From: Dendrobates tinctorius
Taxonomy: Eukaryota
Direction of reading: 5' to 3'
DNA length: 64,000 nt
NCBI RefSeq assembly: GCF_039654945.1
Contig: NW_027361825.1
Span: 21,204,001 to 21,268,000 of the forward strand
The position numbers and the translations under genes were made by a program. The notes under the pieces were generated by a model, which was not told the origin of the DNA, searched no databases, and worked only from the letters and a program-made list of their open reading frames with translations. Within the stretch, counting starts at the first letter, position 1. The number at the start of each line of letters is the position of its first letter. This document shows, one piece after another, positions 34,700 through 64,000 of this stretch.

Positions 34700-34967
34700 C
34701 ACTTCCGGGTCACACACTGAAGTGGAGATGCCACTGTAACCCCGCCCTAATGTCTGATTGGACAATCACAGTGCCAGATACGTTATCATTGGTTTATTCC
34801 AATAACCGGAGTTACTGATTGGTCATTTATTATGTCTACAGGAACCAAGTCCGTTTGATTCGTTCGTCTCTGGGAACTGAATCGCCTCCGGTCTCCTGAT
34901 TGGTCAGTGTCACTTCATACTACCTCCTGATTGGATGGCTCAATTTCCGACACACTGAAACATGGCG
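34700..34967. promoter_or_regulatory. MRPS12/SARS2 bidirectional promoter with CCAAT (NF-Y) array
   Basis: ATTGG/CCAAT at 34757, 34788, 34799, 34818, 34899 and 34930; ETS/GABP ACTTCCGG at 34701; GC box at 34740; YY1-like AAACATGGCG over the SARS2 ATG. Confidence 0.88.
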
Positions 34968-35677
34968 ACCCGCATGCTGCTCAGGTTATGTGTCCGTTCT
35001 ATATGCCGGGGACTTTCAGGGGTGCGGGCTCTGAGCACCGGAGAGTCGGTACCTCCCAGCCGGCTGTACGACTATGTGCGGGAAGGTTACTGCAGCCGCC
35101 CTCAGCTGGATATGGACGCCCTGAGCCGGGACATAGATGCTGCGGAGCGTGAACTGTCGGAGAGGAGACCGGGGAGACCCCCGGAGGGGGAACTGCGGGC
35201 GCTGGTGAGAGAACTGCCTGACCCGGACACCAGAGGGCGCTCAGCTCTGCTATTGGTGGAAAATGTCACTGTAGTACCGCAATGTGACCAGGAGGGGCCG
35301 CTGTTGTTTATGTAGTTAACCCCTTCCTGCCGGGACAATTCTTTTTTCTTGTCTTTTATTCTTAGGCTACTTTCACACCAGGGCTGTGGAGTCGGTAAGC
35401 CAAACCTGCGACTCTGACTCCTCAATTTCCCTTCCACCGACTCCGACATACTGCATACTGCTTATATTTAAGTGAAAAATTTATTGTAGTACAATGTGGA
35501 CACCAGACATTTAATCATTTTTATGATACAATAATCAAGATATTTAGATAGAACATAATATATATTTATTGGAATACAACTTTAGAACACAAAAAACTGT
35601 AATAAATTGTAAATATGTAATACACTATGTAATATCAATTACATATATATATAGTGTGTATATATATATATTGTGTA

Positions 35678-35711
<34 letters not shown>

Positions 35712-38700: not shown

Positions 38701-41700
38701 AAGACTTGTCTGCCCTATAGAAATGAATAGCCCCTTGGTGGCGCTCCTGGCCATTGTACGTGTCCGGCCGACCCTGTGCATATCTGTGAGACGTGCTGGG
38801 GACGGTCAGTGACGTCCCCCGCTCTCGCTGTCCTCGCAGGTGGAGATCTGGGAAGAGCTGCAGACGTTAAGACGAGACATTCACAGCCTGGAGGAGGAGA
38901 AATCCCAAGTGGCCAATGAGGTCAAGGAAATGACGGTGAGTGTTGGGGTCACCAGATGTCATTGAGTCGTATAGAGCGTGTATCGATTAGTCTTATATAA
39001 TGAGGTCACACGTGATTTGTGGGGGGTCAGAGCTCCAATCCTCTGCTTCCCTTCACAGTACCATTCAGTTGGAATTCTGACTACGTACAGCCACCACTAG
39101 GGGGAGCTCACTACATGTATATAGCAAATTGGTATAGAAATATTTGTATTAAAACTTAACTTTTAATCTTACATTTTTTAAGGAGCTCACTACATACAGA
39201 TTTATACAGCCACCACTAGGGAGAGCTCATTGTCTAGAGCTTTATACAGCCACCACCATCGGAGCTCACTACATACAGGTTTATACAGCCGTCACTAGGG
39301 GGAGCTCGCTGTATATGGATTTATACAGCCACCACTGGAGGGAGCTCATTGTATGGGTATAAAGTGACTGGATTTCTTTTGCAGAGGAGTTTGTTTAGTA
39401 ATATAGAGAGTGGGCATGTGTCGTCAATAGGTTTGTCATTCTGCTATAAACATCATGATTTCTGGATTCCCTAATTCTCCCTCTTTTCCCCTCAGCTGAC
39501 ACACGATCGTCAGGATCTGCCATCGGTAAGGATCTTCATTTTCCTGAAGGGGCGAGGCCTAATAGGGGAGGCGGAGTTTAGCGTCTGGTCTATAGCAGAC
39601 GCAGCGGTGGGGAAGAGCTGCTGCAGCCGGTAGCCTGACAGCCAGACACGAGTGTGATCTTATATGGGGGGGGGGTGGAGAGGAAAACGACTGATCACTG
39701 GGGACACTGATAGGAGTTTGTGGCAAGCATAAGGAATTACATATAAGACCTGCTGAGACTTGTGGTTCCTCATCACTATAATTACATTTGTGATTTAGAT
39801 CCCCAGGTATCTGACAATCAGAAACAGAGGGAAGGAGATCCGACAACAGCTGTCCGCTCTCTACCGGCAGGAGAACGATCTGGAAGAGTCATTCTACGTT
39901 CGGGCCCTTAAGTTGCCTAATCGGACCCATCCGGGTACAGTGAGTAGCAAACAAAAAACCCTGGGAAGGTGAGGGTGGTAAAGAAAAAGAACAGACAGGC
40001 TGTAACAGCGCCAGTGTCCATGGTGTAAGTATCTGGTGCTGTGGTTTTCATGTGAATTAAACTGAGCTGCAGTACCCGGCAGAGCCATGCACAAGAGGGG
40101 CGCTGTGTCTGCAGCTTGTGGGGGCCTCTGCCACAGAGTTCTTCTGCATGCAGGGTAATAATTTGCAGCTCACGTCGTCTCATTCTTTCTACAGCCTGTT
40201 GGGTCTGAAAGCAACGCGCGGCTGCTGGAGGTTGTTGGACAGAAGGCCGGTAAGGATGGGGATGCGGTGTGTGAACAGTCCCATAGTCAAGGAGTGGTTA
40301 AACATCTGCCCATACGTGGTATATATTGCAGATATACCAGACACGACCCATGGCACGTTGTGCAGCAGACAGTTTTATTTTTTCGATAATGCTGCCATGT
40401 CAGAGTTCAGCTCTGAAGGCAGCAAAACTCTGCATGCGTTTACCTGTTGTCGCCACCAGGGGGAGCTCAGTATATTAGGCTAATCAAGACTGAAACATCC
40501 ATGTGCCAGGTCTATAACAGGTGGTGGCGCTGGTTAAACCCTTCCGGAATGGGTGATCATTTTTTTTATTTACTTTTGTGCTTCCATTTTTTTCCTCCCT
40601 CTATTCCATCAGCTCTAACTTTTGCTTTTCTTTCTTTTTTCTCTGCAGTGTTTTCTGTTTGGAATAATTCATTGTAATATTCTCATACTATAGTATTTTA
40701 CACATGTGGCAATTCCAAATATGTTTTATTTTTTATGTAGCTGTAAAAACCTTTTATTAGTTTTTCACTTTCATTTATGTGAACCTGGGATTGTTTGTTC
40801 AAAACCTTGCTCTGTATACTATAATACCGCACCCTGGTGCAGACATATTATTCCCACCATATTAAGGATCATAGAGACTATCCCCGGGGGCCTGAACTAA
40901 AGGACTAAAGTGCAGTAAAATATCCCACCATATTTACGTCTTACAGAAGTTGGTGGGATTTTGTGCCAATGCCCCATGGTGTCGCTCTGGACCCCACATC
41001 CACTGCTGCCATGATGGTGGTCTCATGATCACCGGCCCTGCAGATGTTCGCTCCGGTACAGGCAGCTCTTCAGGGTCCGGAGGAGACTATATCTTAATTT
41101 TATTGTTTTTTTTGCTTCCAGAGTTTGATTTTAAAGTTCGAGGTCACCTGGAAATTGGGGAGGATCTGGACATCATCAGACAGAGGTATCCCGTCCCAGC
41201 GGTCGTCCTGCCCCTTCTCTGCTTTTGTGTTCTGACGGCAGACTTCTTTATTGTTGGGTATTATCACATAACGGGCTTTGGCCGGAGGCAGTTTCCAGCC
41301 TGCGCTCCTGTCTGCGTAATGTGACAGTATCGTGCACATGTCAGCACCTGATGGCGGCTTTATTAGCTGCTGCGGAGCCCATGGCCGGGACCATTACAGA
41401 TAATTATCCCTGCGCCCTCCAGGTAAAGCTTTGTCATGTAAGGGACACATTGTACCGAGTAGATGTATAGAGCCAGCTCTCCGAGGGACACGTGGGGTGG
41501 TGACGCATCAGTCTGGGGGGGCACGTGTGGTGGTGGCGTATCTCTTTAGGGGGCACGTGTGGTGGTGGCGTATCTCTCTAGGGGGCACATATGGTGGTGG
41601 CGCATCTGACGTGGATTCTGTCCTGTTCCTTCAGGCGTCTCTCACACATCTCTGGGAACCGCTGTTACTACCTGCGGGGGTCCGGCTCCATGTTGCAGCA

Positions 41701-44700
41701 CGCGCTGGTGAACTTCACTATCACCAAACTCGTAAAGAAGGTAAACGGACGAGCTCACCATCATCACTTGTGACCGGAGCAATAAGGGGCTTGCTGACCG
41801 CTGTTCTCAATCGCTCAGCCAGCCCCCTTCTCTGTACAGGATTATCTAGACTGGATTCATTGCAGAAGACGAGGAATGGAGATCTGTTACCCAAAAGGGA
41901 GACCCTCCAACCCCAGAGCAGTTTACCACGGTCATCCAAACTTACTGATCGGTGGGGTCTGACAACTGGACCCTGCATGCGATCAGCATCACAGGAAATT
42001 ATCCCCAGTACACATGTCGACTGCTGCACCATTCGTTCTCTATGGAGGACAGCACTTGGCAGCCCCAAGGAATGGATGGAGCAGAGGTTGTACTTGTGCA
42101 CAGCTGATCCGTGCGGGCCCCAGCAGACAAATCCCCTCTCATCAACAAGTTACTACCTGTGCTGTGTGTACACGATGGCTTCTTATCACCGGACAACCCC
42201 TTTAAAGTCATTGACTGTATAGGGAACAGAACGCTGTCCCATCCCCAGTAATGCATCAGTGCTGCAGCCCCTCCATTATTCTCAGGACTGATGAGGGTCC
42301 GTGCTTATTATTTTCTCCTTTTTTCTCTCTGTTGCAGGGATTTATTCCTCTCTCTGTCCCAGACATGCTGAAAGGAGCCGTATTTGTGAGTCTTCTTCAT
42401 ATCCATTTTGCTTCCTTTCTTAAATGGATGTTCGGGGGGAGGGGTGCAGGTTAAGAATGTCCGGAACCATAAACATACTCTTTATTTTTATATAGCGCTA
42501 ACATATTCCGCAGCGCTTTATAGTTTGCACACGTTATCATCACTGTCCCCGATGGGGATCACAATCTAAATTCCCTATCAGTATGTCTTTGGAATGTGGG
42601 AGGAAACCCACGCAAACACGGGGAGAACATACAAACTCCTTGCAGATGTTGTCATTGGTGGGATTCGAACCCAGGCTGCAGCGCTAACCACTGAGCCACC
42701 ATGCTGCCCATGGAGAGGTTGTTTACCCAGAAAAGTCTGATAATCTGCCCCTCATTAATGACAATTCTTGCTCCTGTGACCAGTAGTCTGCTTTATCCTG
42801 CTCATGGATATTGAGCCCGTGGATTAGCTGAGTGGAGCCCACAACTCTCCGTTATTCTGCCTTAATAGCCTTTTGTTGCTTGTGTGTGCCCCCTGCCTGA
42901 CCTATACACTCCCCCCATGTCCCAGGAGGGTTGCGGCATGCAGCCGACCGCCCACAGCTCGCAGGTCTACAGCTTGGATCCATCTGCCCACCCCGACCTG
43001 CATTTGGCAGGGACCTCGGAGGTTGGAATCGCAGGTAATTACATGTCCGGGCCTCATTTTACAGAATGACCAGTGCGTCTGGGATTCGCTAGTAGGTTGG
43101 GGATGAGTCCATTTTGCTCACGTTTCATTCCTGGTCGCTTTCTTGTATTCTCAGGTTATTTTATGGATCATGCAGTAGAATTGTCAGATCTGCCCATTCG
43201 GTGAGTTTTTACTTTCTGGTATCTAGAAGAAGGAGCTTGAGGGTTCTCCGGTGCTGCATCAGGAGGTGAGCAGTGCTGGTGATGGTGGTTCTGCACATAC
43301 CTGCCAGGACGCGTGCATAATCGCTGAGTCTTGTCCTCTGGTTGCAGCATATAAGGACCGCTATCTGCTAGTTGTGAGTGAAACCCGGCAGGTATGTGCC
43401 GATGCACTAGCACCCCTCACCTCCCGATGCAGAAGTAGGCAGCACCGGATAATTCTTTTAGTATATAAAACCCCGACCATATGGTAATCCGCGCCCGCTT
43501 TCAGCCTCCTCTCTATATTTTTCTGTTTTTCATCGGCAGGATTGTTTGCTGCAGCACATGTTACCGAGCAGAGACCGACACCGGCCGGGAAACGTGGGGT
43601 CTCTACCGAGTTCACCATTTCACCAAGGTCGCTGTCTTTCCTCGGGGTGTCTCGGGGCACAATCCTTTTCTCCGGAGAGGTGGTCACCATATTGGCGTCT
43701 TTTGCAGGTGGAGATGTTTGGGGTCACCGCTGATGAGACTGGTAACGAGAGTCAGGAGTTACTGGAGGAGTTTCTGGACCTGCAGAAAGAGATTTTCTCC
43801 GATCTGGGGTTACACTTTCAGTGAGTAAAAGCATAGATCCTCGTGGACCCTGGGAATCTCGGGAAGATGCTGGTTTATCCAGTGGATCCGAATTTCTGCA
43901 CGCTGCACTATTCCTGCAGCCGTAAGTAATGAAACTCCCTATGGAGCCTGTGATGGAAGGGGGAACCATGTGGGCAAAAAGGGCTGCATCCGTCACCAGT
44001 CTGTCCCATACTGTTCGTACACGTGACTGTATCTGGGTATAACATTTTCCTTGTGATGTTTCTAGTGTTTTGGAAATGCCAAGTGAGGAACTTGGGCTCC
44101 CCGCTTACCGGAAATGTGACATAGAGGCCTGGATGCCAGGGCGAGGGAAGTACGGAGAGGTGCGTACTCCATGTTAATTACTCGTTCTGCAGCCAGAGCA
44201 GCTCCTCTCTATGTAGTACCAGAGCTGTCAGCAGAGGGCACTACGAGGGGTCATTCCTTATACACGTTTACCTCCATATAGTGCTCATATTATTATTCCC
44301 GTTCCCCAAGATTTCCAGTGCATCAAACTGCACCGATTTCCAGAGCCGGAGGCTGAACATCATGTACCGGAGACCTGATGGAGAGCTGCGGCACGCTCAC
44401 ACGGTGAGATTACTGCACCCCACCCAGGGACATGTCATTGCCCAGAATCGGACATCAGTGCTGTGCGCAAAATGCATTTGTCACTTATCTCATATATTGA
44501 TAATCATTATCTATTGGTGGTCCGGGCCCCCCAGTGATCAGCTGTCAGAAGATCATAGATGTACACGGAGTGGATTCAGAACAACACAGCGCCACACACT
44601 GTAGTGGCCATTCTCAGGTACTGCAGCTCGGCTTCTATTAAAGGGAATCTATCTCCCCATTTTTGGACTATGAGCTGCCGGCACCGCCATCAGGGGCTTA

Positions 44701-46145: not shown

Positions 46146-48162
46146 CTGGGGCAGAGAATGAGATGAAAACTTTCCCTTATTACATTAATGTCTAAGGCTC
46201 CTGCTCCTGGTACATAGCAGTGATCTGAAGCTGCCACCAGTGGGAGCCCCTTACATACAAGTTTATGTAGCTCCCATTGCATTCAGCACTTGCTGTAGCA
46301 GTTAGCTCCCCCTAGTGGTGGCTTCGTCTATGCAGGATTTTATTATTTATCAAGTCAGAAAATCGGATCTTCACTAATATGAAATGAATCAGGACCCGAA
46401 TGTGGATATTACCTTTAATAAAGGTGGGGTACAGTCCATTCTGCATCTTTGGCGCTACAATTTTAATGTGCTTCTGTCTTGAGCAGCATCTGCCTCCCCC
46501 GCTGTGACCGCTGAATGCTCAAGTAGCCGCCATGTTAGTCCCCTTTCAACATCCAGTCACACACCGAGCTCCATAAGGGAACGGCGATGTCACTATATAC
46601 TGGAACGCTGCGATATTACAGTATATGGTGTAAGAAATCAAACAATCACAGGTTCAAGTCCCATAAGAGAAACTGAAAAGTAAAAGAGGGAAAAAAGGTT
46701 TAGAAAAAAATATGAAATTTCTAGTAAAAATAAAAAACTTAAATATAAAAATTATATTTACTGTTAAATGTTTTTTTTATTTAATACCAATTTTTTTTTT
46801 TTTTTTTATCTTAGTTATCGCTGTAATGACTCCGGTCTGGAGCCTCATGTTTTCAGGATATTTATCACACAACGAACGCCATTTAAAACAAATCACCCCC
46901 ACAAAAAAAAGCAATGGTGGGATTGTGTTGTATGGTGTTTCCCCCCAATTCTACTACACTTGGATTTTTCTTCTGTTTTTCAATACGTTATGCGGTAAAA
47001 TGAGCGTCGCTCAAAACTACAATTTATCTCGCAAAAATCAAGCCCTCATAAGGATAAGGCAATGGAATAGTAAAAGGAAAAAACGTTTTGGTCCTTGGAA
47101 GAAGGAATGTAAAAGAACACAGGAGCAAAGACAATAATTCCTGTGTCTTTAAGGGGCAATGATCATTGTGTACACAACTGCTGATGAGGATTATGGTTTT
47201 ATAGCCGTCTAAGTTTATTGATCCAAGAGAGGTCGTCGTGGTCGGTTATGACTGGAGAAATTTCACAAGCTTTTAGATAGGGGGGTTCCCAGCACCCAGA
47301 TTCCGACCACTATCACTAAAATGGGGGGGCAGTAGTAGTGAGAATCTGTGGTCCTGAGTGAGAATGATCCTTCATGTGGGGTCTCTCCACTTGGATTCAT
47401 TCAAAACTTTTGAATAGTCTCTACATGTCAAAAATGTTTGTGCACATTAAAGGGTCACTCCATCACTTTTCTCATATAATAAGTCACCAGTAATTTTCAA
47501 GCTGTGTGATCCACTGTATCCCCTCTCACTTGCAGCCACCATTGCCCTCCTCACCCTGGCATTTGTTATGGGGAGCTGTGTCATGCAATCTTCAGTCAGA
47601 CCACCAGTCCTGTGAATGCTGTAAGCCATTGTTCCTCAATTTGTGGCTCTCCAACTGTCTAAAAAGTACAACTTCCATCATGCCCTGGCAGTTGTAGGTT
47701 GTGATGGTGTGAGGGGAATTGTAGACTTCAGTTTTGGACTTGGAGATGAAAGATGAGTGCTGTGACCAGAATCTCCTGCCAGCATAAAACTAGAGCACAC
47801 GAGAAGCTTATCACAAGCAGGAGCCAGAAGAGCACACAAGTAGGAGAGGAAAAAAAGGGGGACGCACATAGGGTGATATTGAAAGGTACAGATAAGAAGG
47901 GACTTATGGAGTTGTTCACCTGAAAGGGTTGTGATTGTCACAACACCAATAATTACCCATGAATATTCCAGCTACTGCATTCCTGTTGCCAAACAAAGGA
48001 TAATTCTCTTTTGCATATTGATTAACAGAAAAAGGAGATTGACGTTTCAGAGTAGACAGCGCTGCTGTATGAAGGAAGCCATTCCAGAGTGGAATAGCAA
48101 TTTTGTATTTTTTATTTTTATGCATTTCGTGATCACACCGAGCTATTTTTCAAAAACAAACT

Positions 48163-48846
48163 TGTCATGCTGCCGCTGTATACTCACCCAGCCTCCGCTC
48201 CCGCGCCGCAGCCCCCCGCCGTTCGGCAGCTGTGGCAGCCCCTTCTGACAGGTCCGCAGCCGACGGCATCAATGGCAGACCAGGCAGGGGTATATCAGGC
48301 CGTCCTCCTTTGAGGGAGGCGCCTGATCGTCGTGTTTGCTAGCACACTGGGCCCTGCTTCCTCGTGTACTCTCTGCAGTCCCGTAGTCCTGTCTTCCGTG
48401 GTTCCTGCAGCAGTCCTGTATTCCGTGGGTCCTGCTATCTATGCTCCAGTCCTGCTTCCCATGTTCCTGCTCCGTCCAGCTGTCTATGCTCCAGTCCTGC
48501 AGTCCTACTCCGGTCCTGGCTCCAGTGATCCTGCTCTGTCCTGCTGTCTATGCTCCAGTCCCGCAGTCCTACTCCGGTCCTGGCTCCAGTGATCCCACTT
48601 CGTCCTACTATCCCTTGTCCGGCCCTGCAATCCTACTCTGGTCCTACCTTCTACAGTCTCGTGCTCCTACTCCTGTACGTTCTGAGCCACCCCTCTTGGT
48701 ACCAACTATCGTGGTACCTGGGCCTGCTCCTAACGATCCCTGTATAGGGGTCGGCTCCACCTGGCAGCTTGCCCTGGGCCCCTCGGTGCCACGATCCAGA
48801 GGGCCCACTCCTGGAGAGTTTCCTCACCTGACCAGCCGTGGTAACA
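48163..48846. mobile_element. Probable solo LTR (Gypsy-like) inside a palindromic MITE (~48020-49010)
   Basis: TGTCA...TAACA termini, 5-bp flanks AAACT/GAACT, internal short tandem duplications; the flanking arms are reverse complements. Confidence 0.65.
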
Positions 48847-50279
48847 GAACTACATAGCACTTATGTTGTTTGTTTTTGAAAAAGATCTTGGTGCGAGCAC
48901 AAAACATGTAAAAATACAAACTACGAAATTGCTATTCCACTCTGGAGCTGCTTCTTTCATGCAGCAGCGTAGTCCACCCTGAAATGTCAATCTCCTTTTT
49001 CTGTCACAAGCAGGAGCCAGAAGAGCCCACGCTCTTATTACAAGAAGCTTACAAGCTGATTACAAGAAGGATGATGCTGCATCACCTAAAATACACTGAA
49101 ACTATTCAGGTTGAGGGGATACAAGTTCTGTCACTAATCTATTACAGACTGTCCCTAGATTGGGGCAATGCGATGAGACTGCCTGCTCTGCAAAGACCTA
49201 GGCACCCATATTAAAAGGAATCAAAACTATGTAGACTTTTTTCTTTTGCTCAGAGCCTTGCTGCGTCTTGCTGACTTTCTTTACTTCCTTCTAAATCCTT
49301 GAAAAACAAGAGTTAAAGAGGGCATCTTTCATCCCCAAGTTCAAAATGACTTAATATAGATATTGGATTGTTTCTGAATCTCATTGAATGTGCTGCCAAA
49401 TGTAGTTTGAACGGACCCTGAAGCACACATTGGAGAACCTATTAAAGCTGGGGCGAACCGGTGATTTTGGCTGCAGCACAGGTTGCTCAGCCAATGATTG
49501 CTGAACGGTGCAAGTGAATGGGTCTGGTGAAAGGAGTCTCCAAATGTCGATATTGGGGAACATTCTTGCCCAGTACCCTGACTCTGGCAGCAGTAAGCTG
49601 TGTTCCTTGCCGGATTGAATGATCATGTCAGGGACAATAAGCTGCCGGCAGCCATGACTTAACGCTCCGGCTGTCAAACAAAGCACGACTGACATTTTGC
49701 GGGAAGTCCTGCAGGTTTGTTCTTTAGTAATAGGTTTTTCTGCTTTCTGACTCAATAGTCACATTATGCAGTGAGACAACACACTAATGTGGTCGGGGAT
49801 TGTGGTGGCTCCAGGCTTGTTTCCATCCCCGTCCAGGTGGCAGGCAGGAGCCCCTGCAGCGAGCAGTCTACACACAAAGGCGAAGACAATGGAGAGGAGG
49901 ACACCTGCCGGGGATCTGCCGGGAACAATAGGAAGAGGCGGATGGAACAGCGACTATTTATACAATAACGGCAGGTCTGCCACCGACACCAGATATTAAT
50001 TCTCTCTGTATTATTCCCTTGGCGTGCTCCACAGTACATCGGCGCGGTGTAAAATGTGAATACGGTCTCACGTAACCTATCCCTTTACTGTGCATCCACA
50101 TGGGGTAGAAATGCAGAAAATCCACAGTGTAACATAAGATGCATTGTGGATAAGATCTGATCACATCACATTTACACGCAATGGAAGATTCAGAAATCTT
50201 GCAATTTTCTCACTGTTCACTGAGCTTAAGACAAGACTCATACTTCCTGATCTGTTCTGATCACCAAAGACAGGATTAC

Positions 50280-50870
50280 ACAATTCACAATGGGTGATAT
50301 CACAGCTCACCTCCTCCCCCTCCCATACAATGACTGATATCACCTTTATATATTGTAGATATCATAGGATCCACCATGTACAATAGGTGATGTCACAGAT
50401 CACTTCCTCACCCTCTTGTACAATGACTGATAACTCCTCTATACACAGCACATAACACAGGATCCACCATATACAACAGGTGATGTCATAGCTTACTTCC
50501 TCCCCCTCCTGTACAATGACCAATAACACCTCTATATTGTAGATATTGTAAACTCCACCATGTACAACAGGTGATGTCACAGCTTACCTCCCCCTCCTAT
50601 ACAATGACTAATAACACCTCTATATACAGCAGATAACACAGGGTCCACCATATAAAACAGGTGATGTCACAGCTCACCTCCTCCCCTCCTGTATAATTAC
50701 TGATAAAACCTCTATATATTGTAGATATCATAGACCCCACCATGTACAATAGGGGATGTTAGAGCTCACCTCCTTCGTCCTGTACAATGCCGGATAACAT
50801 CTCTACATACAGTAGATAACACAGGATCTACAAATCATAATAGGTGATGTCACAGCTCACCTACTGCCAC
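50280..50870. repeat. ~92-bp tandem repeat (about 7 units)
   Basis: GGTGATGTCACAGCTCACCTCCTCCCCTCCTGTACAATGACTGATAACACCTCTATA recurs. Confidence 0.85.
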
Positions 50871-50950
50871 TCACTTAAGAATGACCATCAGCATGTGCAG
50901 AAAAAAAATCTGTAAAAATCACTAAGTCAGAGTCAGTCTGTTGCTACCTA

Positions 50951-52571
<1,621 letters not shown>

Positions 52572-52849
52572 TATGTCCATATGACTGGTCAAAAGAGCTG
52601 GAAGTATGAGCCTAATGTTAGACCAAGTGTGAGAATTGTAATATTTGTGTTTATTTTTTAAATATAGGGAAAATAAATAATGTTTATGAAAAATAAGTTT
52701 AACATTAAAATCTGATCTGAACAATAGGCCATATTCTGATGACACATTTCCTTTAATACCCCATATGACAGCCGCAAGACCAAACTTAGATCACAACATC
52801 AGTTACTTAATCTGTAGGAGATTGGGTCTCGTGGTTGCAATTACACAGG

Positions 52850-54376
52850 ACGGTCATCTGAAAGGAGAAGTCCCAGAAGATTAGAGAAGGGTAAATGTTG
52901 TCACTATCTTCATAAAGGGGAAGAGGACAGAGCCAGGAAATTACAGGCCAGTGAGCCTTAGGCGGTGTTCACACGTTGCGTTTTTTTTTTTGCGGATTTA
53001 CCAAAAAATCCGCTTAAAAAAGCTTCCCATTCATTTTAATGCATTTTGCACTTTTTGTGCATATTGATGCGCTTTTTTCCACGAAAAAAACGCTTTGCGG
53101 TAAAAAACGCAGCATGCTCATTATTTTCGTGAAAAATTCCGCATTTCTTGCTATTTTCTATGTGTCTGGGCACGCGTGGAAAAAAAACGCATGTTTTTTG
53201 CGCAAAAAACGCGCAGAAAAAAAACGCGCGTTTTCTGGAAAGGAGTCCTGTTTTTATGCAGAAATTTTCTGCATACCAGTGTACATAGCCTTACTTCTTA
53301 CCAGGAAAGATTTTTTTTTTTAATCAAATACTTTTTTTATTAAAATTTGTTTTCGTAAAACAACAGTAAAAAACAGCAACTCAACCATGAAAAGGACCTC
53401 GTCCCTCTTCTATCCCCCCCCAACAACATGTCACCCTTTTAAACACAACATCCCGAGATAAATATTTCCCACTTCTGTCCATAGCAGATTAGAAGTCTTG
53501 CAATATGAATAACCACTATCATAACAATATTAATGGGGAATCTAGATCTTGGTTTGGAACAGTTATACAAGTATATGTGACTAAAGCTGCCCAATGTGGA
53601 ATATAGCATCTATCCTGTCTTTAAATTGAAAACAGACCTAATCGAAATCTTTGCAGTTCTCTGTATGCCAGGCCGTAGTCATCAATTCATGGAGCCCATA
53701 TTTTTTCAAATTTGGAGATGGCCTTCCTTTTTAAATATATAATTTGTTCCAGATTTAATAGCCAATTAAATGTATTTACAAATTCTGTTACTATTGGCGC
53801 CTGCTGTAATAACCAATGTTGGGCCATATATAACGTGGGCCACTGCTATTTTGCCATGTTCGTCAGTGCTCAGATCTTCTATATATCCCAGTATACATAC
53901 TAACGGTGAGGGATCTGTATCGCCTGAGTATGTTCTATTAATAATCGCTATTACATCCCTCCAGAAAGTTTCTAAAGCGGAGCATGTCCACATCATATGA
54001 AACATTTAAGCCAGAGATGTTTTACATCTAGCACATTGGGGTGTTCTATATACCAGGAAAGATATTTGAACGAATTATTAAACAGCATGTATGTAAGTAC
54101 TTGGATTAGAATACAGTAATTAACCAGAGCCAGCATGGGTTTGTAGCAAACAAGTCATGCCCGACTAATTTCCTTCTATGATGGAATCACTGACTGAGTG
54201 GATCAGGGAAATGCGGTAGATATAGTATATCTCGACTTCAACAAAACATTTGATAAAGTGTTTCATACTATTCTTATTGAAAAAATGACCAAGTATGGGA
54301 TTGACAAGGCTACGGTTAGGTGGATTCATAACTGGGTCAGTGATCATAATCAAAGAATGATAATAAATTGTTGCCC
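52850..54376 (+). mobile_element. CR1 LINE RT fragment interrupted by a MITE (52961-53290) and an L1 fragment
   Basis: PGNYRPVSL... and DQGNAVDIVYLDFNKTFDKV...VRWIHNW motifs. Confidence 0.85.
53312..54050 (-). mobile_element. 5'-truncated L1-clade LINE
   Basis: Poly-T at the left end, TSD TACCAGGAAAGAT (53299 and 54051); peptide HMMWTCSALETFWRDV resembles the L1 ORF2 C-terminal cysteine-rich region. Confidence 0.8.
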
Positions 54377-54649
54377 AAGAGATAAGAGAAGAGAAAGGCA
54401 GCACTCACCGTTTCTGACGCAATCCTTTATTAACAGAGGATAAAATATAGCGGCGGGTGGAGTATGTGGGGACAACAATCAGACTTAGACCCGTAGAAGC
54501 GCAGGCCGCGCTATTATTCAATAACGAAATGATCGCTCCATGATGTCATATCCTTTATAGTCACTATATAAAACAGTTCTAGTGATAGTAGGTATGAACA
54601 AGCGTCACATCCCTGCACTACCGGTGGACACACTTGTCAGTAAGCTGGA

Positions 54650-56080
54650 TATAAATTGTATATGTGTGTAATGTATACATATTGTATATGTGTGTAATGT
54701 ATACATATTGTATACTAGATTGTGGCCCGATTCTAACGCATCGGATATTCTAGAATATGGCCAGCGGGAGACTGACTTTCAAAAGATGGTCCAGGATGAT
54801 CCACCACGATCGGCGATCTCACAGCGGGGACCTGGTCGCTGCTGCGTGTCACACTGAGGCTAAGTACCCACGTTGCAGAAATGCGGAAATTTCCGCAGCA
54901 TTTCCGCAACTCTCACCGCGGGAAAAACGAATGCGAATTCGAATGCATTTTTCCCGTGGAAAAGATGCGTTTTTCACGCGATTTTCACGGGAATTCCAGC
55001 GCATTCCAAGCGATTTGAAGCATCGCTTGGAATGTGATTGACAGGTTGGTCACACTTGTCAAGCATAATGTTTGACAATTGTGATCTACTTTTTACTATT
55101 GATGCTGCCTATGCAGCATCAATAGTAAAAGATAGAATGTAAAAAACAATAAAAAAAAAATTAAAAAAAGGTTATTCTCACCTTCCGAAGGCCCCCGATC
55201 TCCTCTCCACGTTCCCGGCATCAGTAATACTTAGCGCGAAGGACCAGAGATGACGTCACTCTCGCGAGAGCGTGACGTCATCAGCGGTCTTTCGCGCAAA
55301 GCATTACTGGGACCGGAAGATGCCGGGCGCGTGGTGAGAGGCGGGAAAGAGTCAGGAGGTGAGTATATCACTATTTTTTATTTTAATTCTATTTTTTACA
55401 GGTTTATGGTACCCAGGGCCTGGAGGACAGTCTCCTCTCCTCCGGACCCTGGGTATCATCCGTACATTGAGCGTTGCGCTGCGCCGGTCATCTCCTGGCT
55501 GCGTCGCCGCTGACCTCCGTGCGGCAGGAGAAGACCCGTGGCAACCGTCGGGAGATCAGCGGCTAGCGCCGCAGATCTCCCAATAGTAGTGGTGGCGTGC
55601 GCTGTTCGAATGCCTCGCCAATTCGCGGCCGGACTGTGCCTGTCGCTGATTGGTCGCAGCCGGCCGGGCACGACCAATCAGCAACGTGGGATTTCCATTA
55701 CAGACAGACAGATTTAGACGATTATGTAGTAGATGTGTGTAATGTATACATATTGTATATGTCTGTAATATATAAATATTGTATATGTGTGTAATGTTTA
55801 CATACAGTATTGTATATGTATGTAATATTGTATATGTGTGTAATGTATACATATTGTATATGTGTGTAATATATACATATTGTATATGGTGTATGTATGT
55901 ATAATGATGTATACATATTATATATGGTGTATGTTTGTAATGTATACATATTGTATATGGTGTGTGTTGTGTAATGTATCTATATTGTGTATGTGTGTAT
56001 ATTGTATGCATATTGCATGTGATGTATGTGTATGATGTATGCATATTGTGTATGTGTGCATGGTGGTGTAATGTGTATGT
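54650..56080. repeat. ~26-bp AT/GT-rich minisatellite interrupted by a composite non-autonomous element (~54713-55734, possibly Helitron/HINE-like)
   Basis: ATATTGTATATGTGTGTAATGTATAC units on both sides; the insert starts TACTAGATTGTGGCCCGATTCTAACGCATCGG and ends (CAGA)n...GTAGAT. Confidence 0.65.
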
Positions 56081-56359
56081 CAGTAGGGTTGTTACAGAGG
56101 CGGCCCGGACATGTCCCGCACAAGGGCAGAATCCTTTGTCGTCAGTGTTTGACCCTGATTTTTATGGCGTTTTTTTTCCGTATACCATGCCATAATTCAC
56201 GTTACCTGCCATACTATGTATGAACCTGCAGTCACAAGTGTAAAGGTGAAGGCATATACAATCAAGAAGAAAGATTATATAAAGCGATGGCTAAATTATG
56301 ATGGATGGAGCCACCTGCTTGGGAGGGGGTGTAAGAGGAGCCACAGGTACAGAGCAGGC

Positions 56360-56420
56360 AGATGGAGGGGGTGTCAATGTGACGACATTCGCCCTGCACT
56401 CTGCCAGCTATATATTCTGC
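56360..56420 (+). promoter_or_regulatory. Candidate CRE + TATA proximal promoter of the CCER2-like gene
   Basis: GGAGGGGG (56364), CRE-like TGACGACA (56380) and TATATATT (56409), ~135 bp before ATG 56546; alternative TATATAAA at 56276. Confidence 0.5.
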
Positions 56421-56545
56421 AGCTACAGACACACTGTGCAAACTGTGGTCCAGCCCGAAGCTCAGGCTCTCCGCATCCTTCCTGTGTCTGCCTCATCATA
56501 AGCCTGGGCTGAGGGAATCCCACCATCATCAGCATCAGCGCGTCC

Positions 56546-57669
56546 ATGATGGGACCTGTCAAGTGTTTACTGCTTGCAGCTGTCTGCTTGCAAGGTAAGA
56601 GCTGCAGTCTGCCAAGTGTAATGTCCTCTGTCGTTGGGAAGACCCCTCCAAGGTGAGACCTGGATCTGCAGTAATACATGACCAGACTGGTATCAGATCC
56701 CGTATTGTAATAAGTTATTAATGCATTATGCTAAAAAATCCATTTAAATTCCAAATATGTGATCTGCGAATTAGTGTTCTCCTTCGAGGATAGGTTTCCT
56801 ATTCATAGATTTGGTTGTAAGTCATCAATTATACATGATCTATTCCAGATAACGGTATTATCATCCCTGGGGTTATTGCTGGCTTCCCGGTAATTAGGTT
56901 ATTTCCATAAAATCCTATATAAGGTGAAATGACGTAATTAATATAATATATTGCTGTACATAAAGGGTCTGCGGAGCGTTACATCAAGCACATTAATTAT
57001 GGTGCCCACAAGTTCATATTGACTCCTGGTGACCATGCCACGTTCTTATTCTCTATGTTTGCCTCCATCCTTCTGGTTCCTGATCCGTCACTCACCATAA
57101 ATGTCTTTTTTTAACCTGGTGTAAATGCAGCTGTTCTCCTGAATCCGGCGATGTTTTTCTTTTCTTCCTGCGCCTCTCCGTTCCTGAGATATGGCCTCTT
57201 ATTCCTTGTGTATAAATCTAGTTTTGTTTTCCAAGTGGGCGTGGTGCTCAGCTCTTTTCTGAGGATCACACCCAGTTGGATTAAAGGACTGGATTGATAT
57301 GCAGGAAAGAGTAGGCCATATCTCAGGAACGGAAAGGCGCAGGAAGAAAAGAAAAACAGCGCCAGATTCAGGAGACAGCGACGTTTACACCATATAAAAA
57401 ACTGCATATTTTGGTACGTGATTGATCCCCTTTAAGTCTCCTGTGCTTTCTTATGAGTTGGGTCTTGGTCTAATCTGGTAATTTCTGAAAAATTCTGGAT
57501 GATGTGGTCACGGTTCTTCTCCTTGATTTTGATCTCCAGATTGATCATTATCATAGAGCGTTGTATAAGCCCCAGAAGTGTCATTGATATTGAAGAGTTA
57601 ATCTTTTCGTTTCATTCTTTAGTTTCCACCATGCCCCTGTCCAGCCAGCTGTCCGAAGAAGAAGAAAAG
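56546..57669 (+). CDS. CCER2: First two coding exons of a secreted, chromogranin-like protein; probable CCER2 orthologue (gene continues beyond the window)
   Basis: Exon 1 56546-56594 (49 nt, CAAG|GTAAGA) and exon 2 57623-57669 (47 nt, pyrimidine tract TTTAG|, AAG|GTGAGC) splice in frame to MMGPVKCLLLAAVCLQVSTMPLSSQLSEEEEK. Position and strand match CCER2 downstream of SARS2 in human. Symbol rests on synteny. Confidence 0.72.
57110..57400. mobile_element. Palindromic MITE in intron 1 of the CCER2-like gene
   Basis: GGTGTAAATGCAGCTGTTCTCCTGAATCCGGCG...CGCCAGATTCAGGAGACAGCGACGTTTACACC inverted arms. Confidence 0.75.
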
Positions 57670-57693
57670 GTGAGCGTTATGGGTACACATCTA

Positions 57694-59322
<1,629 letters not shown>

Positions 59323-59494
59323 TATATGCATAATTTGGTAACACATGACTTATTTATTTATTGCTAGCTGAAGAGCCCGGCGTTGCTCGGGCATAGTAAC
59401 CAACTACGGTTAGTTATAACAAATTATAATGATTATATCTATATTTATAAAGCTGAGTGTATAGCCCTGCCCACTCCGCATAGCCACATTCACT

Positions 59495-59990
59495 ATAATA
59501 TCCCTCATCATCCCGTCAACCAGAGCCACTGGACTACTACCCGGAATATCCCACATCATCCCGTCAGCCAGAGCCACCGGACTACTACCACTAATATCCC
59601 ACATCATCCCTTCACAGCCACCGGACTACTACCCCTAATATCCCACATCATCCCATCAGCCAGAGCCACCGGACTACTACCGGGAATATCCCACATCGTC
59701 CCGTCAGCCAGAGCTACCGGACTACTACCTCTAATATCCCACATCATCCCGTCACAGCCACCGAACTACTACCACTAATATCCCACATCATCCCATCAGC
59801 CAAAACCACCGGACTACTCCCCCTAATATCCCACATCATCCCGTCAGCCAGAGCCACCGGACTACTACCCTAATATCCCACATCATCCCGTGAGCCAAAG
59901 CCACCGGACTACTCCCCCTTATATCCCACATCATCCCGTCAGCCAGAGCCACCGGACTACTTCACCAAATATCCCACATCATCCCGTTAG
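59495..59990. repeat. ~46-48-bp minisatellite
   Basis: ATATCCCACATCATCCCGTCAGCCAGAGCCACCGGACTACTACCCCTA, about 10 units. Confidence 0.9.
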
Positions 59991-60825
59991 CCTGGGGTCA
60001 GAATCAGAGCGCTCTGCGGAATGGTCCTAACTTCAATACCGGGGATCCCTTTAAGAGAAGCCTGGCGTCAGAACCATAGCGCTGAGTGAGAATCAGAGCG
60101 CTGAGGGATTTACTCTAACTTCCATACCGGAGATCCCTTTAAGAGAAGCCTGGGGTCAGTACCAAAGCGCAGAGTGGGTTTGCCCTTATTTCCATACCGG
60201 GGATCCCTTTAAGAGGGGCCTGGGGTCAGACTCATAGCACTGAGTGGAATTGCTCTAACTTCCATACCAATGATCCCTTTAAGAGAGCCTGGGGTCAGTA
60301 CCAGAGGATTTGAAGGCAATTGCCCTGACTTCCATGTCGGGGATCCCGTTAAGAGAGCCTGGGGACAGAACCAGAACGCTGAGTGGAATTGCCCTAACTT
60401 CCATACCGGAGATCCCTTTAATAGAAGCCTGGGGTCAGAATCAGAGCACTGAGGGATTTGCCCTATCTTCCATACCCGAGATCCCTTTAAAAGAGGCCTG
60501 GGGTCAGTATCAAAGCGCAGAGTGGATTTGCCCTGACTTCCGTACCGGGGATCCCTTTAAGAGGGGCCTGGGGTCAGAACCAGAGTGGTTAGTGGAATTG
60601 CCCTAACTTCCATACCAATGATCCCTTTAAACCACAGAGCTGAGTGGAACGGTCCTAACTTCCATACCGGGGATCCCTTTAAGAGAGGACTGGGGTCAGA
60701 ACCAGAGCGCTGGATGGATTTGCCCTGACTTCCATACTAATGATCTCTTTAATAGAAGCCTGGGGTCAGAATCAGAGCGCTGAGGGATTTGCCCTAACTT
60801 CCATACCGGAGATCCCTTTAAGAGG
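59990..60825. repeat. ~69-bp minisatellite
   Basis: GCCTGGGGTCAGAATCAGAGCGCTGAGGGATTTGCCCTAACTTCCATACCGGAGATCCCTTTAAGAGAA, about 12 units. Confidence 0.9.
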
Positions 60826-61178
60826 GAAGACGTGCCTATGGGATGGAGGATGTGTGATGGGGATATGGGCACGGGAGGGGGGGATTGATTTCTGTCATGT
60901 GCTCTCTGCTCCTTTCTGGGGGGCAGACAATGGCTGGGAGCTTATATTCCCGGGGATGTTAGATTTCTCCCACCATGTCAGTGTCTGCTGAGGTGTTGTC
61001 TGGAGTGGCAAAATTGTTGCTCATAGCAACCAATCACAGCTCAGCTTCTTTTAAACAGCTCTGGTGAAATGAAAGATGCTTCGTGATTGGTTGATGATAC
61101 ACACACACATACATTCAATTTTATATATATAGATATGTGTAAAATATGAACATCATCTCTCACAATACTTTACATGTA

Positions 61179-62743
61179 CAGTCATGGCCAAAAGTTTTGA
61201 GAATGACACAAATATTATATTTTCACATGATCTGCTGCCCTCTGGTTTTTATGTGTGTTTGTCAGATGTTTTTATCACATACAGAAATATAATTGGAATC
61301 ATATTATGAGTAACAAAAGGTTATATTGACAGTTAGAATGAGTTAATGCAGCAAGTCAATATTTGCAGTGTTGACCCTTCTTCTTCAGGACCTCAGCAAT
61401 TCTCCCTGGCATGCTCTCAATCAACTTCTGGATCAAATCCTGACTGATAGCAGTCCATTCTTGCAAAATCAATGCTTTTATTTTGTCTGAATTTGAAGGT
61501 TTTTGTTTGTCCACCCGTCTCTTGATGATTGACCACAAGTTCTCAATGGGATTAAGATCTGGGGAGTTTCCAGGCCATGGTCCCAAAATCTCTATGTTTT
61601 GTTCCCTGAGCCATTTAGTTATCACCTTTGCTTTATGGCAAGGTGCTCCATCATGTTGAAAAAGGCATTGCTGATCGCCAAACTGCTCTTGGACGGTTGG
61701 GAGAAGTTGCTCTTGGAGGACATTCTGGTACCATTCTTTATTCATGGCTGTGTTTTTAGGCAAGACTGAGAGAGAGCCCATTCCCTTGGCTGAGAAGCCA
61801 CCCCACACATGAATGGTTTCAGGATGCTTGACAGTTGGCATGAGACAAGACTGGTGGTAGCGCTCACCTGGTCTTCTCCGAATAAGCCGTTTTCCAGATG
61901 TCCCAAACAATCGAAAAGGGGATTCATGAGAGAAAATGACTTTACCCAGTCCTCAGCAGTCCACTCCCTGTACCTCTTGCAGAATATCAGTCTGTCCATG
62001 ATGTTTTTTCTGGAGAGAAGTGGCTTCTTTGCTGCCCTCCTTGAGACCAGGCCTTGCTCCAAGAGTCTCCGCCTCACAGTGCGTGCAGATGCACTCACAC
62101 CTGCCTGCTGCCATTCCTGAGCAAGCTCTGCACTGCTGGTAGCCCGATCCGCAGCTGAAACACTTTTAAGAGACGGTCCTGGCGCTTGCTGGTCTTTCTT
62201 GGGCGCCCTGGAGCCTTTTTGGCAACAAGGGAACCTCTCTCCTTGAAGTTCTTGATGATGCGATAGATTGTTGACTGAGGTGCAATCTTTCTATCTGCGA
62301 TACTCTTCCCTGTTAGGCCATTTTTGTGCAGTGCAATGATGACTGCACGTGTTTCTTTAGAGATAACCATGGTTAACAGAAGAGAAACAATGATGCCAAG
62401 CACCAGCCTCCTTTTAAAGTGTCCAGTGGTGTCATTCTTACTTAATCATGACAGATTGATCTCCAGCCCTGTCCTCATCAACACCCACACCTGTGTTAAT
62501 GGAGCAATCACTGAAACGATGTTAGCTGGTCCTTTTAAGGCAGGGCTGCAATGATGTTGAAATGTGTTTTGGGGGATAAAGTTAATTTTCTAGGCAAATA
62601 TTGACTTTGCAAGTAATTGCTGTTAAGCTGATCACTCTTTCTAACATTCTGGAGTATATGCAAATTGCCATTAGAAAAAATGAAGCAGTAGACTTTGTAA
62701 AAATTAATATTTGTGTCATTCTCTAAACTTTTGGCCATGACTG
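61179..62743 (-). mobile_element. Full-length Tc1/mariner transposon with DD35E spacing, two frameshifts
   Basis: TA|CAGTCATGGCCAAAAGTTT...AAACTTTTGGCCATGACTG|TA; ORFs 62095-62403, 61742-62098 and 61356-61910; FQHDGAPCH...NPIE has 35 residues between D and E. Confidence 0.95.
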
Positions 62744-63474
62744 TAATATATCATACCTCTCATGTTAAACATGACATCTAATTTGTGGGCAGCATGTTGT
62801 AGAGCAGGAGGAGCTGAGCTGATTGAGATATAGGTTTGTAGGAAAAGATTCATTATAACTTGAAATAAATTCACTTAAATCTATGATCTTTATAAACTCA
62901 GGAGTCCAGTGGGAGGTCTCAATCACTAAATAAGACCGCCCACTGGACACTTGAGCATAGAAAGATCATGGATTTAAGTGATTGTATTACCAGTTATACT
63001 TCATCTTATATACAAAAAATATATAGCAGTCTTCTCAGCTCTTACTGCTCTATAAGTCTGTGTTCACAGGTCAGTATTTCCATTTTTATGATCTTTTTGA
63101 GGAGCATAAAAACAGAAATAAAGAGTTCCCATACTGGACCTCGTCTATTAAATGGATTTCATTTTCCTAAAATGTCATCATTTTGCATCCATTCCATCTG
63201 ATATTTGTTTTTTGGATGGACAAAAAAGCCCATAGTCTGCAAAACTCTTTTTTCCATCCACAAAAACAGGCAACTGAACAGAGGCTTCCATTTTTTTTAC
63301 AATAAAGGGAATCTGACAGCAGGATTTCATCACCCCTAAAACTATTTATATGTACATGTCGCTCTTTCAAAGACACGTCCAGCAATACCTTTACATCGAC
63401 AGTCCATTCCTTCATTACTGAGAAATGAGTGTTTGAACTGATATGTTAATGAGGCTGAAGTGCTATGGTAGATT

Positions 63475-64000
63475 ATTATTATTTATTTATTTATTTATAT
63501 AGCACCATTGATTCCATGGTGCTGTACTTAAGGGGTTACATACAAATTACAGATATCACTTACAGTAAACAATCTAACAATCACAGACTGATATAGAGGG
63601 GAGAGAGGACCTTGCCCTTTCGGGCTTACATGCTACAGGATGGTGGGGAAGGAGACAGTAGGTTGGGGGGTTGCAGCAGTTCCGGTGTTGGTTGAGGTGA
63701 TATCTCCGGTAGTGGTGAGGAGGCAGCGGGGTCATTGCAGGCTGTAGGTGTTCTTGAAGAGGTGGGTTTTCAGGTTCCGTCTGAAGGATCCGAATGTGGT
63801 TGATAGTCGGAAATGATGGGGCAAAGAATTCCAGAGGATGGGAGCTATTCGGGAGAAGTCTTGGAGGCGGTTGGGTGAGGAACGAAAAAGTGTGGAGGAG
63901 AGAAGGAGGTCTTGGGATGACCGGAGATTACGTGAGGGAAGGTATAGGGAGATTAGTTCAGAGACATATGGAGGAGACAGGTTATAGATGGCCTTGTAGG
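63475..64000 (-). mobile_element. L2-clade LINE 3' end, runs off the right edge
   Basis: (TTA/TTTA)n tail, then TATAGCACCATTGATTCCATGGTGCTGTAC hairpin; the minus strand resembles the 3' part of the L2 at 17940-18200. Confidence 0.8.

Follow-up and report, generated by a model that had tools for sequence, protein, structure and literature searches.

What kind of gene begins with two micro-exons directly downstream of SARS2 in the frog Dendrobates tinctorius, and is its product related to the chromogranins? The window analysed here, a stretch of 64,000 nucleotides (contig NW_027361825.1, positions 21,204,001 to 21,268,000), contains these exons, and an original prediction made from the letters alone had read them as the start of a hidden secreted-protein gene at the CCER2 position that is built like chromogranin A (CHGA) and chromogranin B (CHGB). 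These micro-exons are the first two exons of D. tinctorius CCER2, a gene for an acidic secreted protein, and we conclude with high confidence that the CHGA/CHGB family has in CCER2 a true third member, with the micro-exons as its frog 5' end. The gene is old, being present from sharks and the coelacanth to mammals, and is separate from CHGA and CHGB.

The coding part of exon 1 starts with the ATG at 56546 and extends to 56594 on the plus strand (49 nt), encoding MMGPVKCLLLAAVCLQ plus one further nucleotide, that is, signal peptide corresponding to residues 1-16 of the NCBI protein P0016 (exon 1 in its mapping, MMGPVKCLLLAAVCLQV), and it ends in the strong donor CAAG/gtaaga. Exon 2 is located at 57623-57669 on the same strand (47 nt), where a pyrimidine tract and AG precede the exon (acceptor ttcattctttag) and the donor reads AAG/gtgagc; it encodes (V)STMPLSSQLSEEEEK, in which the signal peptide ends and the mature protein begins, as indicated by the sequence, by the spliced joint of the sequencing run X3 and by the P0016 mapping. 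Intron 1 (56595-57622, 1028 nt, GT..AG) is defined by the same joint, while the first 6.3 kb of the 13.86-kb intron 2 occupy 57670-64000 and harbour Tc1/mariner copies and tandem repeats. Joined, the two exons yield the 32 residues MMGPVKCLLLAAVCLQVSTMPLSSQLSEEEEK, ending in phase 0, exactly as the original prediction had written them together with the lengths of 49 nt and 47 nt; the splice sites are GT/AG. By analogy, VST/MPL is the predicted signal-peptide cleavage site. The loop exon (exon 3) was not found by a motif scan inside the window and lies beyond 64000. Upstream of the start codon, the 5' untranslated part of exon 1 covers at least 56400-56545 (plus strand) according to an X3 contig spanning 56400-56594, contigs of this kind being unable to fix the true start. 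A putative TATA-like box (TATATATT, 56409-56416, plus strand) upstream of exon 1 is conserved among D. tinctorius, Anomaloglossus and the bullfrog in an alignment of the upstream regions; the X3 RNA contig already begins at 56400. As a possible promoter element of granin type, the CRE-like (cAMP response element) sequence TGACGACA at 56380-56387 was rejected, since the bullfrog reads TGATCACA at this position.

Transcript support comes from public sequencing contigs aligned to 56200-57720. These stem from four runs with four organism labels, none of which is on record as RNA, and only X3, from a relative ~92% identical, was informative. Since its depth is ~335 over the exon vs 23 over the intron, X3 is taken as RNA-like. 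A single contig spans 56400-56594 and ends at the exon 1 donor with a depth of 335, and the joint 56594->57623, at which spliced reads had been proposed as a check, is present with a depth of 237, skips 1028 bases with GT..AG ends and coincides with the database gene model of P0016. As a caveat, this joint is carried by one contig whose shorter side has 28 letters, just below the 31-letter rule. A 92-letter loose end after exon 2 starts CACTAGATGTATCATGGAGGTCCTGGCAGA, and (GT)CACTAGATGTATCATGGAGGTCCTGGCAGA reads VTRCIMEVLA, the GT being the two bases that the aligner assigned to the intron. Most run matches to the region are due to a high-copy inverted-repeat element within intron 1 (57106-57409), probably a miniature inverted-repeat transposable element, for which each of the four runs shows depths in the thousands to tens of thousands together with many opposite-strand joints.

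The identity of the gene was established by protein searches. When the 32 residues were searched with phmmer in a set of 1.84 billion representatives, one match was obtained (E 1.7e-9), the bullfrog 'hypothetical protein' PIO40187.1, which carries the loop exon, continuing with VTRCIMEVLAESLSKQGPERVSSGCIRLLRE before entering the intron; the bullfrog locus also contains an exon encoding DERLISILRHQHLLKELEDLSHRG and an acidic exon of the 740-nt class. The bullfrog acidic exon as query returned ~20 frog proteins of 344-379 residues, nearly all of them named 'coiled-coil domain-containing glutamate-rich protein 2' (CCER2) by NCBI. The residues encoded in the window match the N-termini of P0016 (D. 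tinctorius) and P0015 (Anomaloglossus baeobatrachus) at 32/32 positions, and window positions 46546-64000 show 100% identity to the opening 17455 bases of the P0016 locus L002 (GCA_039654945.1, JAYMGB010000048.1), so that the gene is already annotated and not hidden as had been proposed: NCBI lists CCER2 in the same assembly and in >20 other amphibians.

P0016 is a CCER2 protein of 357 aa, and exact spliced mapping places it on six coding exons of 49/47/94/69/740/75 nt with start phases 0, 1, 0, 1, 1, 0 and GT-AG ends at all introns. Exons 3-6, all on the plus strand, lie 7.5-21 kb past the window end. Exon 3 (94 nt, phase 0; L002 24981-25074, window-equivalent 71526-71619; VTRCIMEVLAESLTSSGPERVSSGCIRLLKED) is located 13.9 kb downstream of exon 2 and encodes VTRCIMEVLAESL...GC, which forms a Cys-x20-Cys loop. 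Exon 4 (69 nt; L002 25481-25549, window-equivalent 72026-72094; ERLIAMLRHQHLLRELEDLTQRE) encodes the CHGA-like ERLIAMLRHQHLLRELEDL, and exon 5 (740 nt; L002 28990-29729, window-equivalent 75535-76274) the long acidic body of 246 residues with ~ten dibasic sites. The final exon 6 (75 nt, phase 0; L002 38426-38500, window-equivalent 84971-85045; ERDLQQVEEELRKAAERLQELHRG) terminates in ...EEELRKAAERLQELHRG. The mature protein has 94 Asp+Glu in 338 residues (28%) and 13 dibasic positions. The forecast of what should follow downstream was borne out in both of its parts, exon 3 being a 94-nt phase-0 exon that reads V-T-R-C-I-M-E-V and has its second Cys 20 residues on, and the long acidic exon with dibasic sites being present after the helix exon.

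The strongest evidence for the kinship between CCER2 and the chromogranins is gene structure. Exon maps were made on the fetched loci of CCER2 (two frogs, lizard, sawfish and opossum), CHGA (Solea and Varanus) and CHGB (Zosterops). The coding exons measure 46/47/94/69/863/84 nt for sawfish CCER2, 52/47/94/69/872/78 nt for that of Anolis and 55/29/88/51/536/81 nt for that of the opossum, compared with 46/50/94/69/105/348/404/84 nt for Solea CHGA, (114)/94/69/99/531/437/84 nt for Varanus CHGA and 43/44/94/1628/84 nt for Zosterops CHGB. Intron phases are equal at every exon common to the maps of the three families. The 94-nt loop exon and a phase-0 last exon occur in all three, while the 69-nt helix exon is found in CCER2 and CHGA only and not in CHGB. 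Because the gene structure matches across CCER2, CHGA and CHGB, both a chance resemblance of acidic proteins and a retrocopy are ruled out.

Sequence comparisons point in the same direction. A protein search with profile A1, built from 13 amphibian CCER2 proteins, matched CCER2-named proteins of salamanders, caecilians, squamates, turtles, the coelacanth, marsupials and placentals, shark and ray proteins that are nameless or called 'chromogranin-A-like', the true CHGA of monitor lizard, gar and teleosts, and, at the margin, bird CHGB. In an alignment across CCER2, CHGA and CHGB the N-terminal 66 and the last 30 residues are near gap-free. Aligned to CHGA with hhalign, amphibian CCER2 reaches a probability of 99.8% (E 1.2e-28, 89 columns) and mammalian CCER2 one of 94% (E 1.4e-7, 63 columns), and the two CCER2 profiles align to each other with 99.7% (E 3.5e-25, 201 columns). 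With the Pfam Granin model (PF01271; gathering cut-off 25 bits), the CCER2-type proteins of sawfish (47.7 bits), catshark (38.3 bits), Geotrypetes (35.6 bits), coelacanth (32 bits), Anolis (30.9 bits) and soft-shelled turtle (28.9 bits) are recognised, as are 4/10 amphibian CCER2 proteins (30-36 bits); axolotl CCER2 scores 23.8 bits, and for comparison Varanus CHGA and Zosterops CHGB score 118 bits and 129 bits, respectively. The N-terminal pieces of 32 and 42 residues gave no Pfam match, being too short, and a region search with residues 69-137 of P0012 returned amphibian CCER2 only, there being too few 5-residue words in common with CHGA and CHGB. Soon after the signal peptide, P0016 has two Cys 20 residues apart (CIMEVLAESLTSSGPERVSSGC), a spacing identical to that of the retrieved CHGA and CHGB proteins, and the granin landmarks are intact in the frog and conserved across amphibian CCER2, with a mean column identity of 58%. 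The proposed homology to CHGA and CHGB is upheld at both protein ends, with the loop exon, the last exon and the intron phases in common.

Orthology of the frog gene to mammalian CCER2 is established by the position of SARS2 upstream in frog, lizard and opossum. In the window, SARS2 (mitochondrial seryl-tRNA synthetase, plus strand) has its exon 1 at 34962 and exons recognisable from SerRS-like stop-free stretches to ~44400 (34962-44400), and it is arranged head-to-head with a coding exon of MRPS12 (31804-32223, minus strand), the family being assigned by eye from ribosomal protein S12 hallmarks in the reading frame. The micro-exons come next after SARS2 and share its orientation, as expected for the CCER2 position. 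The Anolis gene upstream of CCER2 has the same orientation and a Pfam tRNA-synt_2b domain, and a convergent gene with ankyrin repeats follows downstream; the order in the opossum is tRNA-synt_2b gene, CCER2, ankyrin gene, SIR2. The human order is presumably SARS2-CCER2-NFKBIB-SIRT2. Moreover, the block S-[DE]-EET-x-Q-[FY]-E is present in 70/70 retrieved CCER2-type proteins from shark to seal, P0016 included, and in none of the retrieved CHGA or CHGB proteins; the count covers all returned proteins, among them non-human primate CCER2, which entered by count alone and not by alignment.

CCER2-type genes occur in sharks, rays, the coelacanth, amphibians, squamates, turtles, marsupials and placentals. 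The A1 matches from teleosts are all CHGA and those from birds all CHGB, so that neither group contributed a CCER2-type protein with the EETAQFE block; in these two groups CCER2 may be lost or unassembled. In the wombat Vombatus ursinus (P0080), Arg replaces the first loop Cys (VTRRLEE), which five other marsupials retain; the wombat either has truly lost the loop or is affected by a fault in assembly or annotation.

The separateness of the three families was assessed with a maximum-likelihood tree of 38 proteins and 96 columns, in which CHGA is represented by lizard, gar and teleosts and which was built without frog CHGA or CHGB. Clades of CHGA (support 99/99) and CHGB (100/100) are recovered, each without any CCER2-type sequence, while the CCER2 sequences form the backbone, and the long CHGA and CHGB branches join near the slow-evolving shark and coelacanth sequences. 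A nesting of the gene within CHGA or CHGB, the counter-case that the original prediction had named, is thus not seen. Shark and coelacanth CCER2 share 50% identity with CHGA in the N-domain and 53% at the C-terminus, above the values between CHGA and CHGB themselves (36% and 40%, respectively).

Several observations weigh against placing CCER2 in this family. P0016 itself scores 20 bits (E 3.7e-4) with Pfam Granin, below the 25-bit cut-off, and mammalian CCER2 has no Pfam Granin match at all, so that of the profile checks suggested beforehand the hhalign comparison and the scores of many non-mammalian orthologues above 25 bits speak for the assignment and the score of the frog protein does not. 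Placental CCER2 lacks the RHQ helix. We take the PROSITE granin signatures to be an N-terminal loop pattern and a C-terminal [DE]-[SN]-L-[SAN]-x2-[DE]-x-E-L; judged by eye, the P0016 loop is not an exact match to the former, with A, E, S and G in place of S, D/N, K and E, and its C-terminus RDLQQVEEEL fits 4/7 fixed positions of the latter. Going by the sequence, loop and C-terminus are positional homologues of the granin signatures and not exact matches. In the tree, CCER2 is not a supported clade, although its monophyly is unrejected in the approximately unbiased (AU) test (p-AU 0.36), and a clade of amphibian CCER2 with CHGA is likewise unrejected (p-AU 0.148), the data being too short.

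This last result bears on the proposal that the gene is simply the frog CHGA orthologue moved beside SARS2, with no third family member, which we consider very improbable. Exon 4 (ERLIAMLRHQHLLRELEDL) and the 69-nt exon that it forms are common to CHGA and not CHGB, NCBI names the Spea and shark orthologues 'chromogranin-A-like', and an ITPK1-like gene lies tail-to-tail with CCER2 in frogs, an arrangement that presumably resembles the human CHGA-ITPK1 pair. Yet the CHGA clade of lizard, gar and teleosts excludes every CCER2-type sequence, and the monitor lizard Varanus possesses both genes, CHGA (P0065) and a CCER2-type protein (P0049). Furthermore, the frog protein has the same private EETAQFE block as mammalian CCER2 and no WE-14-like motif, and the SARS2-CCER2 synteny is the same as in lizard and opossum. 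Finally, a passage of PMC2827800 citing Turquier et al. (1999) records a separate frog chromogranin A cDNA (Q9W7A0).

With CCER2 regarded as a third family, its origin as an ohnologue by whole-genome duplication is plausible and the evidence for it circumstantial. The presence of CCER2 in sharks, rays and the coelacanth dates the family split before crown gnathostomes, and an age before the split of cartilaginous and bony vertebrates fits, without proving, an origin in the two rounds of vertebrate whole-genome duplication (2R). Human chromosome regions 14q, 19q13 and 20p are generally regarded as blocks paralogous to one another. An ITPK1-type gene (Ins134_P3_kin_N and Ins134_P3_kin domains, ~370 aa) is positioned tail-to-tail 0.7-1.1 kb downstream of CCER2 in both dendrobatoid loci (L002:39206-48500, minus strand, window-equivalent 85751-95045, and L003:27381-36254). 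Human ITPK1 is, as we assume, likewise tail-to-tail with CHGA, in which case the frog arrangement would make a duplicated gene pair; the CHGA-ITPK1-like pair may then have been lost beside CCER2 in amniotes, no ITPK1-type gene being present at this position in Anolis and opossum. In Zosterops, CHGB adjoins the Gcd10p (TRMT6) gene, which we take to be its human neighbour as well. A real chromogranin homologue could alternatively have arisen by local or segmental duplication with later translocation, which we regard as rather unlikely: the tree leaves the branching order of the three families unresolved, only ~10 kb of micro-synteny is visible, and no ITPK1-type gene was detected within 10 kb of CHGA in Varanus or Solea. 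Against this stand the split before crown gnathostomes, the frog ITPK1-like gene mirroring the presumed human CHGA-ITPK1 arrangement, and the paralogy generally ascribed to 14q, 19q13 and 20p.

What CCER2 might do can be approached from its family. Through their loop, acidity, dibasic sites and C-terminal helix, the heat-stable, calcium-binding proteins CHGA and CHGB are held to aggregate, to be sorted into dense-core granules and to yield peptides. The parts of CCER2 are a signal peptide, the Cys-x20-Cys loop, the CHGA-type 69-nt helix exon, the glutamate-rich exon and a C-terminal helix ending in RG. After removal of the signal peptide, the loop and the acidic body would drive calcium- and low-pH-dependent aggregation in the trans-Golgi, through which CCER2 would be directed to the dense-core granules of secretory cells, both neuroendocrine and sensory. 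There, prohormone convertases would cut it at dibasic sites, and a likely peptide product would be a strongly conserved segment that follows a KR site (frog: VAEDPSEEETAQFESENRGLKYFNAKTHMHGYHGED). Family resemblance thus suggests sorting to granules, binding of calcium and processing into peptides, and a granule function is plausible. For CHGB, a passage of PMC2132667 describes the loop as needed for granule sorting. Mammalian CCER2 is an established marker of Merkel cell carcinoma and is expressed in neuroendocrine-type cells that also express CHGA (PMC12623243); in the mouse cochlea it is hair-cell specific (PMC7221106), and it serves as a marker of both Merkel cell carcinoma and cochlear hair cells (PMC12623243; PMC9974098; PMC7221106). 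Expression is also seen in small cell lung cancer, and CCER2 can be measured in human plasma (PMC13088631). These reports are consistent with a protein of secretory granules in neuroendocrine and mechanosensory cells and hint indirectly at storage in dense-core granules.

The mammalian protein also lends itself to another reading, in which CCER2 descends from a granin without working as one any longer and serves hair cells and Merkel cells in a different role, as an extracellular or constitutively secreted protein. We think this improbable, yet well short of negligible: mammalian CCER2 is reduced to 260-290 aa with a loop shorter by two residues, placentals lack the RHQ helix and have gained two additional cysteines, Pfam Granin does not recognise the mammalian protein, and the protein circulates in human plasma (PMC13088631). 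On the other side, all granin landmarks are intact in the frog and conserved across amphibians (58% mean column identity), the conserved blocks are flanked by dibasic sites, and mammalian expression falls in CHGA-expressing neuroendocrine-type cells (PMC12623243). Mammalian CCER2 may have drifted in function, given its reduced length and the partial loss of the N-terminal helix; its divergence (short and without a Granin score) also suggests that it was probably named by composition rather than by family. The link to the granins is visible in frog, shark and coelacanth because these forms keep ancestral features that are blurred in mammals. As a tentative proposal, less probable than not, CCER2 could be a long-missing third chromogranin, a 2R ohnologue of CHGA and CHGB and a granule-forming prohormone of mechanosensory and neuroendocrine cells of the ATOH1 lineage (hair and Merkel cells) that releases a conserved peptide containing EETAQFE, and as such could help to explain why dense-core vesicles persist where CHGA and CHGB are both lacking.

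To our knowledge, textbooks and reviews recognise just two granins as truly homologous, chromogranins A and B. The literature searched, which did not extend to many subscription papers, contained no paper that connects CCER2 with granins, and in this respect the gene is an unrecognised granin, as had been claimed; in another respect it is not, as Pfam Granin matches on non-mammalian orthologues and automatic entry names ('chromogranin-A-like', 'Secretogranin-1', 'Chromogranin A') already hint at the relationship. What is new is therefore the undescribed membership in the chromogranin family, and what is known is the gene itself, which is annotated. CCER2 is uncharacterised in human and recurs as a marker of Merkel cell carcinoma and further neuroendocrine tumours, a marker of cochlear hair cells and a plasma protein. 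Kinship with the chromogranins gives it a testable function, comprising loop-based granule sorting, calcium-dependent aggregation and a role as peptide precursor, suggests a candidate conserved peptide, and provides a third gene to weigh where Chga/Chgb knockouts have mild phenotypes.

The surroundings of the exons are rich in repeats. Two Tc1/mariner copies, one in CCER2 intron 2 (57691-59332) and one between SARS2 and CCER2 (50948-52581), share 95.6% identity and contain their transposase reading frames in broken pieces; a further copy is located at 61356-62403 inside intron 2. The same intron contains two tandem arrays (59496-59992 and 60089-60824) with 48-nt and 70-nt units matching at 78-89%, which yield long stop-free frames and are not exons. 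Farther upstream in the window, an 11.5-kb satellite (42-11549) consists of ~131 copies of 86-nt units with 87% match, a higher-order period of 355 and a constant GC skew of +0.18, and a very regular 33-nt tandem repeat (22397-23649; 38 copies, 97% match) is strongly C-skewed with 54% GC. On the minus strand of SARS2 intron 1 (35787-36431), a 214-aa open reading frame has a C-terminal part that, by eye, resembles the dimerisation region of hAT transposases.

Compared with mammalian CCER2, the frog gene has the same SARS2 neighbour upstream, the same six coding exons and phases, the same invariant ASDEETAQFE block and the same C-terminal helix. By contrast, the mammalian proteins are 70-100 residues shorter (260-290 aa) and have a Cys-x18-Cys loop, the RHQ helix is degraded in marsupials and absent in placentals, and two extra cysteines have been gained in placentals. 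CCER2 resembles CHGA in having an X-P-hydrophobic start after the signal peptide, a 94-nt phase-0 exon that carries the Cys-x20-Cys loop, the sequence ERxxSxLRHQxLLKEL on an exon of 69 nt, a middle region that is acidic and contains dibasic sites, and a phase-0 last exon ending in ...L..LRRG or HRG. It differs from CHGA in that the WE-14, catestatin and pancreastatin regions are lacking, the middle is encoded by one exon instead of three, a conserved block of its own is present (KR-VAE-x-x-S-EETAQFE-x-E-x-KG), and the locus lies downstream of SARS2 and the protein outside the CHGA clade (99/99). The start of CCER2, VST/MPL...VTRCIMEVL, resembles the VNS/MPV...VTRCIIEVL of CHGB, with which it also shares the loop exon of 94 nt, one giant exon for the acidic part and a last exon that is short and in phase 0 (LENLxxxxxELxxxAEKL..RG), whereas CHGB has no 69-nt helix exon, is ~twice as long, adjoins TRMT6 (Gcd10p) and forms its own clade (100/100).

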